Source of the DNA: Tetramitus jugosus
Taxonomy: Eukaryota > Protista > Heterolobosea
NCBI GenBank assembly: GCA_937625935.1
Contig: OW569371.1
Span: 1 to 64,000, forward strand
Direction of reading: 5' to 3'
Length of the DNA stretch: 64,000 bases
This document shows positions 802 through 19,590 of this stretch, one piece after another (position 1 is the stretch's first letter; each line of letters starts with the position of its first letter). The position numbers were made by a program, and so were the translations under genes. The notes under the pieces were generated by a model. The model was not told the origin of the DNA and did not search any database. It saw only the letters and a program-made list of their open reading frames with translations.

Positions 802-2546
802 TCGACTTTCTTCTCAAAAATCAAAAGTTTCACCCAAATTCAAAATAGAATCGATCTGTCATCTAAAATCTGATTAAACAAGATTAATGAAAGTTTAAAT
901 CACTCAGTCCATTTCTATATCCACTTCTTGACATTCACTCCTTACTCTTTGTCGAAAACAGAAATTCTTTCATTCAATGCTCAACATCTGGAAGGATTAG
1001 ATGTAATCTAGGGATTCAATACATGTTTAGTGAGTAATCATTTATGTTTCTCTTCACTTCTGATGGGTTGGGTCTGGGTATTCAACTCTGCATCCAAGGA
1101 AGTCTGAACAATCGACATATATTTCTCTCATGAGCCAATCTCACTCCAAAATTGTATTTTCTGCTATATTTCTCAGTAAATGACGTTCATACTTGTGAAT
1201 TCTTATCAACAAGCAAGATCTACTCTTATTTTATGAAGATGTACCTGAACTTTCTACTCTCCACTCATCTTACGAACTGAGATGTTTAATTCTCATTCTG
1301 CCTGTCAAATATGTGACCATATCCTGTTCAAGAATCAAATCTCTCATTCACTATCACTAATTCGGTCCAAATTAGTTGATTTCGCCAGAACAAGAGTGTT
1401 TCATAGCATTCACAAAACTAAACTCAAAAATTAAGCTTATTCTACCGAAAACATCTCATTAAACAACGAAATATCTCCATCATATCCAGATTATCTCTAA
1501 AACTGGTGGAAATCTTCAGTTCAAGACAATTTCAAGTCAATTAAAAGTCATAATACTGAAATGCAACTCAATCGGCCAAAAAACAACAAAAAATGACAGA
1601 AGTAAAAGGTTTAATGCTACAAACGATTACAAGAGGTCTAAAATTCCAGTCTAAAACATGAAAAAAAACTGTTCTCTTATCATACAGTCCAGTGTTAATC
1701 TCATACTTTTATGAAAAAATCTGCCATAACAGTCTGTTGCAGTTTTAATCCTGTCGCAGAGAAAATCTGTTAATTACAGCAGGGAGCGATCGTCTCTTCG
1801 AGACGATAGAGTTTTAATCCTGTTAAATCCTGTTAGAGCTCGTTGAGATGAGTAAAAGTTGTACTGAAAAAGTCCTTTGGGTTGGGTCTGGACTTATGAC
1901 ATGAACACCAAACCCAAACTCAAAAACCTCCCAAAACCATATTTAGACACTCCTCTTCCATAAAAGGCAATATTTTGTCGGTTCAGAAACGAATATAAAG
2001 TCACAGACCCAAACCGAACCCAACCTCTTGTGTCCAAGAGCAGTATACTCGGTGGTCCATAGTATTGATGATGAACGACACTCTCATGTAGAACACTCTA
2101 AAAAGTGTTGTGTTCTTTGGAAATACTTAACAGTATCCACCAAGTTCGGGCAATTCGGTGTTTCAAAAATGTATTAATCAAATCGAACTTTCTGTTTTTC
2201 ACCGAAATTAATATTAATATTATTATTATCTAAGCCAATAGAGCTCTGTGATGCATCACTTGGAGCAAAGAGTAGAGGGTTTTGTTCGTGTAATTTTTAT
2301 ACTTCTCCCATCCATGTTTCTATCAGCTCTCAAGAGGATAATCGAATAATTGGATAAAAATCCATAGATTGCGTACCTTCTCGTCTGATGTAGTTCTAGG
2401 ATAGTTCATATATAGAATATTATTTGTCCAAGCATTGTGTCTGTTTCAATATTGACATGACTAAGGCATCACCAGATTTTGCAATTATTTGAAATTTTTT
2501 TGAAGAACCAGAATATGGGTCCATTGCTGTCGAAGATTGTAATCGG

Positions 2547-8661: not shown

Positions 8662-8932
8662 CCGTTGTTGTCTTCCAATTCGTTCCGTCAACATGAATAA
8701 ACAACTTGTTTGTGATGAACAAGGAAAACAAGTTCCTTCGAGTTCTGGAAAGCGATTTTTCGGACTGACAAGTTGAAGCTCAGCCAAGCACAGCACACTT
8801 CAATCACCAGAATACAATTTTTCTCACAGAAAACAGGAATTTGCCTCTTTTACACAGGAAGTCATTATAAGACTCGTTTAAAAGGCGGTGTCAAAGTCAC
8901 TTCCCAAGTACTGTCCGAGAAAGAGTGCGGGA

Positions 8933-12917: not shown

Positions 12918-13364
12918 TCAAGCAAGCAATAACATCATCAAGTCATCCTTAATAGCAGTTCTGTATTCAATTTCATCAATCACATCAACGAATTGGAAAA
13001 ACCCATCATCCGCACTCAAGAGAGTTACCTGAGGCGTTCTCGCAAATGTTTGCTTTGTGCAGCAATTCGCATGTGTGACAACAACTTGCTCTTTTGGTCT
13101 ACCACCACTCTTTCGGACAACAGTAAATCCATCATCAACTTGATCTTCAATTGAACTGGTTTTTGTTTCTTTCCATAATGGAACTCCAGTAGGGCGATGT
13201 TTCTTACTGGTCATTGGAACCACCAGATAATATTTTCTTGAATCAATGTCCACTTCACCAATGACCACACCTTTGTGCTCCTTGTACATATTGTTTTCTT
13301 CAATGTTCGTAAACTCTGGGAAAATCCCTTGAAAATCGCAGTACCATATCTCAAAACGTTTCAC
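12918..13364 (-). CDS. MazF/PemK-like endoribonuclease domain
   Basis: VKRFEIWYCDF..PE...EHKGVVI...YLVVPMTSK...QTFARTPQVTLLS...FVDVIDEIEYRTAIKDDL maps motif by motif onto MazF/PemK (KRG.IW.VDF, RP.VV, VVPLTS, S.A..DQIRT, C-terminal helix). The only start is GTG, so it may be the frameshifted continuation of 13361-13531. Confidence 0.7.
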   Translation of the reverse strand: MKRFEIWYCDFQGIFPEFTNIEENNMYKEHKGVVIGEVDIDSRKYYLVVPMTSKKHRPTGVPLWKETKTSSIEDQVDDGFTVVRKSGGRPKEQVVVTHANCCTKQTFARTPQVTLLSADDGFFQFVDVIDEIEYRTAIKDDLMMLLLA

Positions 13365-13737: not shown

Positions 13738-14289
13738 ATGCCAATCTACTAGGTATTCAGAATATTCAGACTCTCCTCACAACTAAGAAGTGTGCAAATT
13801 GTTCCAAGTCTGGTACATTGTATCATTGTCACCTTCCACAGATGCAGCTACTGTGAATGCGAAGTGTATTGTTCCAAGGAATGCGAGATAAATCACTTAG
13901 ACGTTCACAAGGAAGTATGTAGTAGTCTCACAGATTCCAGAGCAGCAATAAAGTATCTGATGCACATCGAGATCATGGTCAGAAACAAGAACAACAGCAT
14001 CATCAGTTTTGATCACTCCCTGCTCAAGAAGTTCTATGGGTTCCCTGCCTTGCTGAACCACTACTACACTGATCAATATGAAACGATAGGGGACATCATC
14101 ACTACAAGATTGAGATATGAACAAAACACACAAAACTGTAAAGATCAGTTGGACATTTTTTCAATGGAAGAGCCCTATATAACATTTTCTCATTTGCAAA
14201 ATGTCACAAAGGAAGTTACTGTTCTAGATACACCACGACTTTACAGGAAATGTTGTTTTCGGCGCGAAAGAAGAAGACAGGTGAAGTAG
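13738..14289 (+). pseudogene. MYND zinc-finger protein, frameshifted
   Basis: KKCANCSKSG in one frame (~13785-13815) joins HRCSYCECEVYCSKECEINHLDVHKEVC in another. Together they give the full MYND pattern. There is an in-frame TAG after ATG 13738. Confidence 0.6.
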
Positions 14290-14375: not shown

Positions 14376-15050
14376 TCATGAAATAGATGTAGTTGTTGCA
14401 CTAGATTCAGCAACAGATCCAGAGTCACTTGTTGGGATGGTCTTGAGTGTAACACCAATAGCCTTGAGATCGGAAATCAGAGTATTTGACAGACCATTTA
14501 ACAATGAAGCACATAGTCTTCTAACACAATGTTGTTCATCAAATATAGCTGTATATGATTGTCTGATGGTCAATCCACACTTATTCCAAGCACAATTTGC
14601 CAGACTGCTTAATTTCTCTGTGTGTACGTATGTGACACCATCTAATAATGCAAATGACTTCTCTGGTTCGTGTGTCTCATCAGGAACACAGAATCCAGTG
14701 TCTGCTAAAACTGCATGCATTATATTCACAGTACGTGCCAGTCACACAGTCATTATGTGACTCACAATGAGCACGAATAACCCCTCTTGCTCTGCACGTT
14801 CCCAAAACACAATTAGTCCCATCTACACATTGTTCAGTAGAGTCACAAGACGTTCCTGTTGACTTCTTTGGCTTGCAGGTGGTATCACAATATTGGTTCG
14901 TACTGCATTCTGAATGTCCATAGCACACCTCGTTTTCTGATCTAATTTGTTCGCATATGTTCTTGTCACTATAGCAAGCACCTCTTCCACATTGAGCCTG
15001 TTTAGTGCATGTATCACTCAAACATCTGTTAATACACTGACATGCCTGAT
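14376..15050 (-). pseudogene. Cysteine-rich repeat (Dickkopf/EB-like) extracellular protein, frameshifted
   Basis: Repeated C-x5-C-x5-C units in 14680-15021 continue in a second frame (14376-14729) into a Ser/Thr-rich tail. There is no ATG start or signal peptide. Confidence 0.5.
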
Positions 15051-15280
15051 GATATAGTGGAAGTAGTAGGATCCTTTGATACTAGGATATCTGTATTTGA
15101 ATAGAATGCCAAAGGCTTTGCAGCACTTTTTGAGAAATTCCATATCGCGTCGTTTCAATGTCTCAGAATCAGCCTCAAGATATACAAGGTGGATATATCT
15201 ATTCAGTTTCGGAAAATGTGAAAAGCAGTAACGGTAATCTGATAGGCAGTAAATCTTAATTGCAGTAGGAAAAATTCTGA
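15018..15280 (-). mobile_element. RAG1/Transib-like transposase remnant, C-terminal part (H-x4-H zinc motif)
   Basis: A frame absent from the ORF track reads EFLKKCCKAFGILFKYRYPSIKGSYYFHYIIRHVSVLTDV*. Vertebrate RAG1, recalled from memory, reads [32 protein letters not shown]. The His pair is at 15059-15042. Confidence 0.55.
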
Positions 15281-15282
15281 AA

Positions 15283-16594
15283 ATGAAACGAACACAAACC
15301 TCTCCTGTATCATCAGGTCACACAAAACAAAAGTATAGACGCAGAAGAAAAGTGGAAAGAAAGAATGATCAAAGCATTATGATTAATTTAACTCTTCAAG
15401 AGTTACATGAGAAGAAACTTGTGTATTTGAAACAACTTTGCCAAGAAAGAAGTATCCAAAAGAAATCAAATAAAAAAATTGTTTTAATTGCCCATCTATT
15501 ACCATATATCACTGACTTGACTGGTATTGATTCTCTAGATGATCACGAGATTGTCATAATATGTTCGACTTTGAACATAAAATATATTTCATCAATACAA
15601 GAGAGGAGAGAAATTCTAAAGAAGGTTGTAGCAACTACTGTTCCTAATATGAACAGTTATGATAATGTGAGAATCATTGAACAGAAAATATCACCCATCG
15701 TCACGGGTAACATAAATGAAGAGTCAAATGTAAACAAGGACGTTTCGTCAATTATAGTTCATAGCGAGAAGATTACACCAAAGACTCTTGTATTTGAAGA
15801 AGAATATACATACTTCGATGACAAAAGCACTCCAGACATGAAAACTCTCACACAATTGAACACCAGTGACTTAGAACGAATCAAGAAAAAACCTCATAAC
15901 CCATGCAGTAGAGCTGGAGCTTGAATTAATTGCACCAAAAACCTCAACTGAAATTGAAGAAGTGTTTGAGAAGAAAGATACGCGAACATGGGGGGAAAAA
16001 CGTTTGGAGAGGTTGCCAAAAACAACACTTTCTTCTGAACCTATATTAAATCCCAAATGGCAGACAGTACATCGAGGTGGTATTAAAACATTGGATGAGT
16101 TTAGAAGGACTTTCCCATTCACACAAGGATCTTTCAAAAGCAATGAAGCAATGGTGTCAAAAGAAATATCCACGTGGAACTTCATTCTTAAAATCAAGCC
16201 TTATGTGTTAAAGGGAAATGGTTAAACCCGCTACTCACAGGCATCTGGGAATATAAACTACCAGACAATCATGGAAGAGCAAAAGTTGCAATGTATGAAA
16301 TCTTCAACTGTACTAACGTTCTTTGTCACAATAGTCAAAAGAAATGTTCAGCCCAGTGGATGTGGCAAAAGCTCTATGATTCTGAAGAAGATCATTTTGA
16401 TACATTGTAAAGGCCAGCATGGAGAGAATTGGATTTCAACAACTATCTTCTCCCGAGGACTAACAGTATCTCAAAAACACTTAGTACAAGTTCAACACAA
16501 TCAATTTGGAGTTTCAGCAAGCAAAATAGCAAATAGGACAGGCTTGGATTCCAAACTTGTGCATAATTTCATTGTCTTGCTTTCTCGATTGTAG
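15283..16594 (+). pseudogene. Frameshifted gene with tandem SAP/HEH-like motifs and a MULE-like zinc/HTH region
   Basis: LHEKKLVYLKQLCQERSIQKKSNKKIVLIAHL is SAP-like. The frameshifted continuation IFNCTNVLCHNSQKKCSAQWMWQK../ILIHCKGQH..LTVSQKHLV..GVSASKIA..VHNF resembles the WRKY/FAR1-like zinc plus HTH N-terminus of Mutator transposases. No DDE core is seen. Confidence 0.35.
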
Positions 16595-16630
16595 AAGGTT
16601 TATTTATTCATTAAGAGATATCAACTACAT

Positions 16631-17086
16631 ATGAATGATGAATCATCTTCTAGAAACATGCCTGGACGATCAAAAAAGGTATCAAACACGACAAGAAAGT
16701 TTGGAAGACCTTCCACTGACAAGCGTTTGACTACCTTAACCAACCGCACGTTCACTATTATAGATCCCAGTGACATTGACCGAATTATTGGAGTCTCCCG
16801 AGAACTGAACCGTACTATGTACAAAGTAGAATGGTCTGATGAATCCCGAGATCAGTGGATTGATTGTCTCGATATGACGAGTGCCCAGTATATGGCTCAT
16901 CAGTATTTGAAATATTTGGATGACTTTTTGGATGAATATGAAGAAGTTACGATGACGAAGTTGAACATCACTTCCGTTATAAAACAAAAAGGGAAATATC
17001 TTGTAGGAAACAACGGGGACTATGAGGAATTATCCACTGAGAATGCAATGGCTACTCGTATATTCCTAAATTTTTTCGATTTCTAA
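16631..17086 (+). CDS. Chromodomain-containing protein or fragment
   Basis: IDRIIGVSRELNRTMYKVEWSDESRDQWIDCLDMTSAQYMAHQYL fits the chromodomain pattern (V/IE.I......Y.V.W......W....l). Confidence 0.6.
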   Translation: MNDESSSRNMPGRSKKVSNTTRKFGRPSTDKRLTTLTNRTFTIIDPSDIDRIIGVSRELNRTMYKVEWSDESRDQWIDCLDMTSAQYMAHQYLKYLDDFLDEYEEVTMTKLNITSVIKQKGKYLVGNNGDYEELSTENAMATRIFLNFFDF

Positions 17087-18452
17087 ATCTACTGCTGCTT
17101 TTCAGTTCAATTTTACTGCTCTTAATATTTACTGCTTTTCCGAATTTCTCTGCTGCTTTTAAGTTCCCTGCATTCAGTTTCATCAACAGCATCTGGACAA
17201 CATCAGCAATATCTCTAAAAGTATGCTCTTGGTTCATCATCATCTCAGTGACATGTTGGAAATGATTTTTGAATTCATTCTATCCCTCATCTCCTTACTA
17301 CTATGCATGAATCTCTTGATTGTACTGCAAACACTTTACAATTAAGGAGAGTCAAAGTGAAAACTACTATACCTTTGGATCCATCAACAGAAGCCTTAAT
17401 TTGAAGTTTCTGCAAATGCTCTAAGTTTGGATATTCATTCTCTTCAATCTCTAGAAGTGATTTCACAATTTCAACAGGATCAACAGAATAACCAATACCA
17501 GAACCAGGTTTTGTTGCTTTCTTCCCTCTGGCAGATGTTGAACGTTTTGGAGTTGGTTTTGGTGGTGTTAAATCAGTTCTTTCAGTCAGATTTGCAAATC
17601 GATTATGATTGTTGCGAGTATTTTCATGGCAGTATTAGCAGCATTGGAAGAATTATTACTTGTCAATTGTTCAGTACTAGATTGATCATTACCAGTAGAA
17701 TTGTTGTTAGAAGCATTAGACATCATTACTTCATCAGAAGGAGTATCACTCATAGTATCTGCACTAGTATTAGAATGAATAGAATTTTCATTGCCTATAT
17801 CAGAAGTGCTAGTATCACTAGTTGCATTAGATTCGCTAGTTCATGAAGTAGTAATTACAGCAGGAGTTGTATAAGTTACTTGCAAGTTGAACTGAACTTG
17901 AACTTTCTTATTGATTTGTTGTCGTCGTTTGTCAAGAGTATTGCTGTGCTTGAGAACATGTACAAAATTGAAATATGTTCTAATAGCTTGAAATTAGCTG
18001 AGACTGATTAGATACCAGTCGAGGAAAAAGAGAGAATTATCTGTATCTAGATTTCTCAAAGTTGAAGCATCTACATGATCCTTGGTGAATTTACGAATCT
18101 CTAATAATTTGGTTTTGCATTTCATTATATGAGTGAGAATTTGATATAGTTCATCCATATTGTTCTTGAAATAATATGCTAGTAATTGAATTTTACCAGG
18201 AACTTTTGGTGAATTATCATTTGCTGATTTGTCATCTGCTGGTTTGTCATTTGTTGAATTGGTTGATTTGTCAGTGTTATCATCATTTTCAGGAGGAGGA
18301 CCATCATATACAACAGATGAAATGAGTGTATTCATAATTCCACCAATCATCACGGTAAGGTTTTTTGGGTTTAAATCCGACAATCCTGAGCGTTGTAACA
18401 AAGCAAAAAAAGATGATAATGAATGGCCAACAGCGCTGCCGTTGGTCAACAT
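17052..18452 (-). mobile_element. RAG1/Transib-like transposase remnant, N-terminal/core part
   Basis: Reading through stops and frameshifts gives LFFLDWYLISLS*FQAIR..LDKRRQQIN, an S/T-rich spacer, GYSVDPVEIVKSLLE..LQIKASVDGSKGIVVFTLTLLN..QSRDS (K-x-S-x-D-G like RAG1 KESCDG; Asp at 17385-17383), then HTFRDIADVVQMLL (LH..R-like). Confidence 0.5.
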
Positions 18453-18468
18453 TTAACAACAAACAAGC

Positions 18469-18990
18469 ATGCCATCACGTGTGAGACAAGCTCCAGCCTA
18501 TTTGGCTGACTATGAGTTAACAGTAGATTTCAGAAGACGTGAATACAGAAGTGGTCCAGTATCTGAAGGAGGAAGGAGGCTTGCAGACAGCAATGATGAT
18601 GCCCGTAAAGGAAGACTGAGCAAATCGAGGAAGGAAATGATTAAGAGTACGGTGTTGCAGTCAATTAGAAAGCGTATGACTGCAAAGAAGCCAATCAGAG
18701 AGTTCAAACGGTTTAGCACTGTTAATTGTCTGGAACGATCCGAGTACAATACATTTGTAAGAGGTACATTGGAGTATTCGTTTGGAAAACAGAACCCTCG
18801 AAACATTGTTCAGAACTCTATCCGTGCCATCATGTCTCTGAAGAAGTTTACGGATGTATTTGGAGATAAAGCAACAAGATCTATTGCGAGAACTGGCATG
18901 AAATGCTGTTTGACATATCCAGTAGTCCTGATGTATAACCAGAAGGACAAGTCAATGTACGTTCAAATGAAATATGAGATAAGAGACTGA
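18469..18990 (+). CDS. Hypothetical basic protein
   Basis: Intact 173-aa ORF with a host-like A/C-rich start context (ACAAACAAGC-ATG) and an N-terminal RxRxxPxYLxDY motif; no recognisable domain. Confidence 0.55.
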   Translation: MPSRVRQAPAYLADYELTVDFRRREYRSGPVSEGGRRLADSNDDARKGRLSKSRKEMIKSTVLQSIRKRMTAKKPIREFKRFSTVNCLERSEYNTFVRGTLEYSFGKQNPRNIVQNSIRAIMSLKKFTDVFGDKATRSIARTGMKCCLTYPVVLMYNQKDKSMYVQMKYEIRD

Positions 18991-19590
18991 GATGGAAAGG
19001 AAATTGATCTGTATGTGATTGGATCTGCCGAGGAAAAGAGAGCTGTGGCTAGCATGCTAAAGGGCAATTCGGCACCAGTTGTTCCAGTACTCGTCGACTG
19101 TCAAGTGACTAGAAGAATATCAGATCAGTGTGAATTTATACCTGTACAATAAGTAAAGGAAGAAGCAAAGCGCTTTCTATGCAAGAGACCATAGATCTGG
19201 TAGTACAACAAGTCACAACCTAGAGCATCATTAAACTTATCATTCGAAATGTCATCTCTCGCTCTCGCTTCGCAGGCTTGTGCTGCAAACAGTCGCCATC
19301 TTTCACACAACATTGTGGTTTTTGAAAATGAAGGAAGAGAGCTATAGTCACGACAATACCAGTTCAATCCAGCTGCTTATATAGTACTTTAATGTGCTGT
19401 TTTTGCTATAATCTGGGTTCACCTTGGTCCAGCTCACCTCATAGGCTTGGGAAATGGAGTTTGACGGGAATTCGTCGACCTATTTTTCGGTTTTAAAACC
19501 AAAAAACCGTCCCGTGTCATGTTACTGAGTTTGTTTCTAGTTGTTGCAGTTTGCTTATCAAATTCCTTTTTGCCTCCTGGTCTATTATTT

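Follow-up and report, generated by a model that had tools for sequence, protein, structure and literature searches.

RAG1, the enzyme that assembles antibody genes, relies on the catalytic residues D600, D708 and E962 and on the zinc ligands C727/C730 and H937/H942, and in models of RAG origin the assumed starting point is a Transib transposon that acquired a kelch gene and left 5-bp target duplications. Transib elements are recognized by a 5-bp target duplication, a terminal CAC(A/T)GTG heptamer and a single gene. RAGL elements with a kelch partner and a 5-bp duplication are known to reach the alga Aureococcus, and Transib occurs in bacteria (Tao et al. 2022, PMC9435367). Transib has also been grouped with EnSpm-like lineages that share C(2)C, H(3-4)H and CA..TG termini, and HHpred links ESTA to RAG1 (Kojima 2025, PMC12730594). 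Here we describe a related locus in the amoeba Tetramitus jugosus (Heterolobosea). The window, the first 64,000 nucleotides of contig C28 (OW569371.1) in a 56-contig, 26.35-Mb assembly (GCA_937625935.1; labels C4 to C51 below denote contigs of the same assembly), holds a transposase relic on the minus strand between 15024 and ~18345. This is very probably what remains of a dead cut-and-paste DNA transposon of a lineage that we call family A, the transposase of which has the RAG1/Transib fold. In the portion of the supplements of Tao et al. (2022, PMC9435367) that was available, there is no mention of Naegleria, Willaertia or Heterolobosea.

A Dismembered Transposase Gene

CCCAAA telomere repeats open the window, and the relic therefore sits 15-18 kb from a chromosome end. 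A reading made from the sequence alone had proposed a dead RAG1-like element at 15018-18452, based on four minus-strand motif strings in RAG1 order that were split by an opposite-strand interruption. Three-frame translation recovers all four at their assigned places: LFFLDWYLISLS followed by an in-frame TAA at 17996-17994 (assigned to ~18030-17900), SVDGSKG at 17391-17371 with its Asp codon at 17385-17383, HTFRDIADVVQMLL inside 17252-17172 (assigned to 17225) and HYIIRH at 15059-15042 (assigned to 15110-15040). The homologous part runs from 15024 to ~18345, and the proposed start codon at 18452 lies in a repeat that has nothing to do with the relic.

The identity of the locus is carried by its match to an intact paralog. 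A search of the genome with the first piece retrieved an uninterrupted 1036-codon frame of family A on C26, with a 1020-residue product, which holds the same motifs in the same order as well as the parts absent from the relic (VVNDWKA..FCGHCDC and YYHYIIRHVPE..QGAEAFH). Window pieces were searched singly, and one local tblastn treated their stops as X. The paralog matches the window in order at 52-76% identity, and the features read as follows, from the 5' end of the gene to its 3' end:

17868 to 18345, minus strand: relic block 1, paralog residues ~285/303-417, the helical region upstream of the catalytic core, 59.8% identity (tblastn 18215-17868 to residues 303-417, E 2.5e-35); its upstream limit is the start of the unrelated repeat at ~18346-18351
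17629 to 17867, minus strand: linker between blocks 1 and 2, divergent, low-complexity and Ser/Asn/Thr-rich, unaligned to the paralog; the frame shifts here
17296 to 17628, minus strand: relic block 2, paralog residues 391/423-517 (tblastn 17628-17296 to residues 391-517, E 4.5e-29; profile E 1.1e-14), retaining the first catalytic Asp (motif SVDGSKG) and a conserved Q.SRDS strand
17182 to 17294, minus strand: relic block 3, following the second frameshift, paralog residues 522-~534 fused to ~696-723, with a stop at 17282-17280 (tblastn 17294-17238 to residues 522-540, part of the 4.5e-29 match, and 17252-17172 to residues 697-723, E 3.8e-4)
17172 to 17181, no strand: right copy of the target-site duplication, the exact 10-mer ATTCAGTTTC
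15211 to 17171, plus strand: nested, internally deleted, putatively Mutator-like element, 1961 bp
15201 to 15210, no strand: left copy of the target-site duplication, the exact 10-mer ATTCAGTTTC
15024 to 15210, minus strand: relic block 4, paralog residues 721/724-782, 75.8% identity (tblastn 15209-15024 to residues 721-782, E 8.8e-25; profile E 6.5e-14), retaining the H(4)H zinc-ligand motif HYIIRH

The same pieces are found by whole-genome HMMER (E 7e-37, 2.7e-26 and 6.3e-26), and the 41-sequence profile described below picks up all four blocks, with E-values between 1e-14 and 2e-5. Both fragments are parts of a single gene, as is evident from the intact paralog, which spans both, and from the junction itself, with paralog residues 723 and 724 joining exactly once the insert and one repeat copy are removed.

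The relic retains paralog residues ~303-540 and 697-782. Lost are the N-terminal ~300 residues, the second Asp/CxxC block and the catalytic Glu with the C-terminus. Both terminal repeats have also gone, as has the partner gene, and the remaining sequence is broken by two stops and two frameshifts (three-frame translation, tblastn). Block 3 has suffered an in-frame loss of ~160 codons that took D564, C581/C584 and H629 (overlapping one-frame tblastn pieces 17294-17238 and 17252-17172), and the homology of block 4 ends at residue 782, 14 codons short of the catalytic E796. The predicted deletion of the segments corresponding to RAG1 D708/CxxC and E962 is thus borne out, with paralog residues ~535-695 gone and the copy ending before the Glu. 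The window copy has neither a complete triad nor an open frame and keeps just the first Asp and the H(4)H motif. No match to the family terminal repeats was seen near the relic or elsewhere in the window, and no partner gene was found downstream of the relic.

Intact Elements and Their Relatives

The genome holds at least three lineages of RAG1-like transposase, mutually 19-30% identical:

Family A: intact on C26, with decayed copies on C32, C46, C38, C24 and in the window
Family B: five 100% identical copies of 4206 bp each
Family C: on C4, C16 and C25

The intact family-A element (C26:338681-342847, 4167 bp) consists of an intronless gene for the 1020-residue transposase and a convergent gene for a 219-residue partner, and intact relatives likewise lack introns. 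It is bounded by perfect 14-bp inverted repeats, CAAGACAACACAGT (L017:4682-4695 and 8835-8848, on C26). With the next base on the 5' side (G) added, CAAGACAACACAGT contains CACAGTG, the consensus heptamer of the recombination signal sequence (RSS) and of Transib, placed internally (repeat positions 9-15) with 8 bp between it and the element end. Family-B elements end in CAATACAGT and CAATCCAGT, and two Naegleria lovaniensis copies, 99.4% identical, end in CAATACAACCAC. For family C, no terminal repeats turned up in the stretch of DNA searched. Inverted repeats beginning CAC and the length of the target duplication had been suggested as checks on the assignment, but the intact heterolobosean elements start CAAT or CAAG, giving the form CA..TG, and no target duplication of any length was seen at five family-B, one family-A and two N. 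lovaniensis insertions (0/8, both ends read, from flanks only, as no empty site was found).

Every one of the five identical family-B copies has an in-frame TAA (L047:5879-5881, on C9) that breaks the 927-codon transposase frame in a conserved region. This leaves three readings: a downstream start of the enzyme, readthrough of the stop, or a burst powered in trans. A variant genetic code is argued against by the 1020-codon frame of family A, which runs without an internal TAA, TAG or TGA.

Outside this genome, the relatives with a named source are annotated only as "hypothetical proteins", and they come from N. lovaniensis, Naegleria gruberi, Willaertia magna and Planoprotostelium fungivorum, and no paper describing them was found in a literature search. 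A quick maximum-likelihood tree places families A and B in one clade with an N. lovaniensis protein (98 in the Shimodaira-Hasegawa-like approximate likelihood ratio test), family B being closer to that protein than to family A, and sets apart family C as well as a Willaertia/Naegleria clade.

Affinity to RAG1 and Transib

Conservation of the transposase follows the RAG1 plan. Residues D488, D564, C581, C584, H629, H771, H776 and E796 (family-A numbering) are invariant in four in-genome lineages. A full HMMER search of proteins returned 763 relatives at E <= 1e-3, and 37 of these were added to a four-sequence profile to give a 41-sequence alignment (A3), in which the D..D..E triad D488/D564/E796 is invariant or at least 90% conserved. 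The C(2)C pair that follows the second Asp (C581/C584) and the H(4)H pair that precedes the Glu (H771/H776) are conserved across the four lineages and the 41 relatives alike; both are predicted zinc ligands, at the places of those of RAG1. A hidden Markov model (HMM) alignment sets H771/H776/E796 on the RAG1 H937/H942/E962 stretch.

Against the PDB, the four-sequence profile matched RAG1 alone, weakly (E 0.16), and with the 41-sequence profile the top 16 matches were all RAG1 or amphioxus RAG1L (E 8.7e-6 to 4.5e-3). An AlphaFold2 model built on A3 for family-A residues 240-870 reached a predicted local distance difference test score (pLDDT) of 80.4 and a predicted template modelling score of 0.78. 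With this model, Foldseek returned 49 matches at E <= 1e-3, every one RAG1, RAG1L or HzTransib (best E 3.8e-11). VIA-align gave Z 22.8 to RAG1 460-1004 (426 residues, 3.7 A), 22.4 to HzTransib (412/480 residues) and 20.5 to BbRAG1L; other DDE transposases scored lower (P element 13.4, ISCth4 9.4, Hermes 7.9). Nothing else was matched at the level of RAG1, RAG1L and Transib, and the sequence-only reading withstands both outcomes that it had named as refuting it, the lack of a profile match and a descent of the two fragments from unrelated genes. Of its assignment to a RAG1-like/Transib superfamily, the fold and the motifs stand, although the 5-bp duplication, the CAC-first terminus and either a single gene or a kelch partner do not.

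Several points weigh against this assignment. The Pfam RAG1 family PF12940 had no direct match in the amoeba proteins themselves, nor in the whole genome, where controls likewise matched nowhere. Single-sequence phmmer with the paralog against the PDB was blank. The four-sequence profile also drew no match in a word-indexed search of 5.8 billion proteins, and since full HMMER gave 763 relatives we take this blank to be a sensitivity limit. The correspondence of D488/D564 to RAG1 D600/D708 is putative, resting on motif, order and aligned ranges. The lack of a target duplication is a reading from flanks, and we infer both the role of the partner and the chemistry of transposition. Finally, the PDB contains no CMC structure, so that a RAG1 fold match by itself cannot part Transib from CMC.

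This last point bears on the most serious alternative, that the family belongs not to Transib/RAG1 proper but elsewhere in the wider CMCT group (EnSpm/CACTA, Mirage, Chapaev, Plavaka, ESTA, Lanisha), with its RAG1 likeness reflecting only that RAG1 and Transib are the solved representatives. Motifs and termini are common to those lineages, in which the ESTA-RAG1 link was reported (Kojima 2025, PMC12730594), and it is on account of these shared features that we keep some weight on this alternative, which we nevertheless consider improbable. The amoeba termini have the form CA..TG, one homolog weakly matches Transposase_21 (E 0.008) and another Transposase_23 (E 0.0013), and the Transib 5-bp duplication and CAC-first heptamer are missing. 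However, CMC duplications of 2-4 bp are equally missing from the amoeba insertions, and PF12940 is the only Pfam family that recurs in external homologs (2/41 and 6/44, or 8/85 overall; best E 1.9e-7). The two histidines are spaced as in RAG1, H(4)H, RAG1_RNase_H clusters and vertebrate RAG1 are among the neighbours in a language-model search, and the fold match spans RAG1 460-1004 end to end. A RAG1/Transib fold in a dead family-A transposon is what we consider very probable.

The Partner Gene

Families A, B and C (the last on C4, C16 and C25), N. lovaniensis and one SRA contig all have a partner gene placed tail-to-tail with the transposase (35-38% identity, E 1e-23 to 3e-52). In P. fungivorum, a partner-like piece (L068:3322-3501, plus strand, E 1.5e-7) instead sits upstream of the transposase on the same strand, an arrangement that has also been reported for the RAGL element of Aureococcus, where the partner differs. 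No homolog of the partner was found beside the Willaertia gene.

The conserved domain of the partner is ~150 residues long and alpha+beta, and its model has a domain pLDDT of 80-93. A look for any convergent RAG2-like kelch gene had been suggested; the second gene is convergent, but it is not RAG2-like. Pfam Kelch has no match in the partner, its model has no Foldseek match at E <= 1e-3 (best 0.025) and no Z >= 5 among 48,161 chains (best 4.7), and thus no solved fold is matched; a PDB sequence profile, the ESM Atlas, Foldseek and a wide VIA-align search returned nothing convincing. We infer that the partner protein acts as a transposition cofactor.

On an SRA contig with a transposase similar to an N. 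gruberi protein (L065:5371-6393, minus strand), the gene convergent with the transposase encodes a different protein, which has a weak 2OG-Fe(II) oxygenase match (E 0.035). This gene may be TET/JBP-type cargo, like those reported beside fungal transposases.

Relics Near Chromosome Ends

The window holds a second remnant of the family, this time of the partner gene:

2025 to 2114, minus strand: partner-gene relic of 26-30 residues, the C-terminal strand motif (profile E 1e-5 and 9e-5), 2 kb from the telomere

Because of its distance and strand, this relic derives from a different dead copy. It is one of five short relics, among 26 partner-gene matches in the genome, that lie less than 10 kb from a contig start (C24:7585, C48:5259, C43:8264, C47:3145 and C28:2025). 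These positions suggest an accumulation of the family's dead copies at chromosome ends. C46, which likewise has a telomere at its start, bears a fuller relic 2-4 kb from that end. In addition, window positions 1454-1808 are 84% identical to C46:3722-4069, just upstream of the C46 relic.

Nested Insertion and Flanking Repeats

The interruption within the relic is a nested transposon insertion that later underwent internal deletion. An opposite-strand interruption of 1.8 kb had been described; the plus-strand insert is present but its true length is 1961 bp. It encodes the N-terminal (SAP-like), middle and C-terminal (chromo-like) parts of a 1153-residue transposase that is intact on C50 (HMMER E 1.6e-8 and 2.6e-24 against the C50 open frame; tblastn residues 435-603 and 993-1151), and its ends are imperfect inverted repeats that match the ends of the C50 element. 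The C50 protein has a Ulp1 (Peptidase_C48) domain (Pfam E 5e-16), a weak SAP match and a CxC..CxH (SWIM-like) motif. The Pfam MULE and SWIM models did not match it at E <= 0.01, and the label "Mutator-like" thus rests on the 10-bp duplication and the CxC..CxH motif.

These details also bear on whether the locus might be a working or domesticated gene, with stops and frame changes hidden in introns and the opposite-strand cassette an intron-borne gene. Four frame pieces do remain recognizable at 52-76% identity, with the first Asp and H(4)H kept. However, the intact relatives have no introns, the cassette edges are a transposon-type 10-bp duplication and not splice sites, and the ~160 codons with the second Asp and CxxC are missing at the DNA level rather than just out of frame. 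Homology moreover stops before the invariant Glu and the first 300 codons have been replaced by another repeat, which together make a functional gene very improbable. That the motif order is a chance likeness in AT-rich, non-coding subtelomeric DNA, for which the blank Pfam search of all window pieces could be cited, is refuted by the E-values of 1e-25 to 1e-37 to the intact paralog, by independent relics on four other contigs and by profile matches that use the sequences of other species, leaving it a practically negligible probability.

The repeat that replaces the 5' part of the gene is ~1.2 kb long, occupies 18351-19520 and abuts the relic at ~18346-18351, with copies 86-95% identical on C13, C31, C49, C29, C51 and C40. 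The listed 152-residue open reading frame (ORF) therefore begins in this other element, which contributes its first ~35 codons and the ATG at 18452. A 173-residue "orphan" ORF (18469-18990, plus strand) is likewise part of the repeat and not a unique gene. A candidate CAC-type terminus at 19460-19516 lacks support, as there is no terminal-repeat match near the relic and the stretch lies inside the repeat. On the other side, a Cys-rich Dickkopf_N/DUF7107-like ORF (14683-15021, minus strand, E 1.4e-8) directly adjoins the truncated 3' end of the relic. Two further neighbours are an ORF at 12921-13364 (minus strand) with a weak PemK/MazF-toxin match below the cut-off (E 0.0018) and one at 13792-14286 (plus strand) with a weak MYND finger match (E 4e-4).

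History and Significance

The intact elements would move by DDE-catalysed excision and integration, and integration would leave no target-site duplication. The window copy, lacking catalytic parts, termini and partner, is unable to move. A putative Mutator-like element inserted into the relic later and then lost its own middle, and the relic would now be decaying neutrally 15-18 kb from the telomere.

The relic itself is functionless but it records the history of its family, in which RAG1-shaped transposases long resident in an amoeba split into deep lineages, died, were invaded by other transposons and accumulated near chromosome ends. The relic also opened the way to an intact family-A element with an RSS-type heptamer, CACAGTG, in its terminal repeat. 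What the window contributes is the family-A lineage with its intact element, the exact lesions, the nested insertion, the N. lovaniensis termini and the pattern of relics at chromosome ends.

As a broader and tentative reading, possible rather than probable, heterolobosean and amoebozoan amoebae may harbor an old, diversified RAG1/Transib branch that independently recruited a small partner and integrates without staggered target cuts. If so, the presence of at least three divergent lineages and of scattered chromosome-end relics would point to long vertical residence and not to recent transfer. The family would then be a second, independent "transposase plus cofactor" solution, parallel to RAG2, against which models of RAG1-RAG2 origin could be tested. 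With such a sister solution in protists, the contribution of the cofactor and the control of target cutting would become questions open to experiment.

Comparison With Known Systems

The insert resembles Mutator-like elements with a Ulp1 protease in its 10-bp duplication, imperfect terminal repeats and internally deleted, non-autonomous form, whereas its intact relative on C50 is unlike them in drawing no Pfam MULE or SWIM match at E <= 0.01. Members of the CMCT group (EnSpm/CACTA, Mirage, Chapaev, ESTA, Plavaka, Lanisha) make 2-5-bp duplications and the amoeba elements show none; Transposase_21 and Transposase_23 are matched, weakly, by two of the 85 homologs (one each).

Transib (HzTransib, PDB 6pqx; Kapitonov and Jurka 2005) is likewise a cut-and-paste transposon only a few kb long that ends in short inverted repeats, and the folds are similar (Z 22.4). 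The family-A repeat shares CACAGTG with it, but this heptamer is internal in the amoeba and terminal in Transib. The amoeba elements also have two genes instead of one and show no 5-bp duplication in eight insertions, and in the PDB their sequence profile finds RAG1 and RAG1L but misses HzTransib.

With RAG1 and RAGL (mouse RAG1; BbRAG1L, PDB 6b40; AanRAGL), sequence identity to the amoeba enzyme is only 11-13%. The amoeba partner has a ~150-residue alpha+beta domain in place of the six-bladed, RAG2-like kelch propeller of RAGL/ProtoRAG, and the elements lack the 5-bp duplication of RAGL and start CAAT or CAAG instead of CAC. The two-gene layout of RAGL/ProtoRAG is nonetheless shared, being convergent in the heterolobosean copies. 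The enzymes are alike in the order D..D..E, in C(2)C and in H(4)H, the amoeba HxPE...GS....E aligning to RAG1 H942-E962, and the fold match (Z 20.5-22.8) begins at the dimerisation/DNA-binding region and reaches the C-terminal domain.

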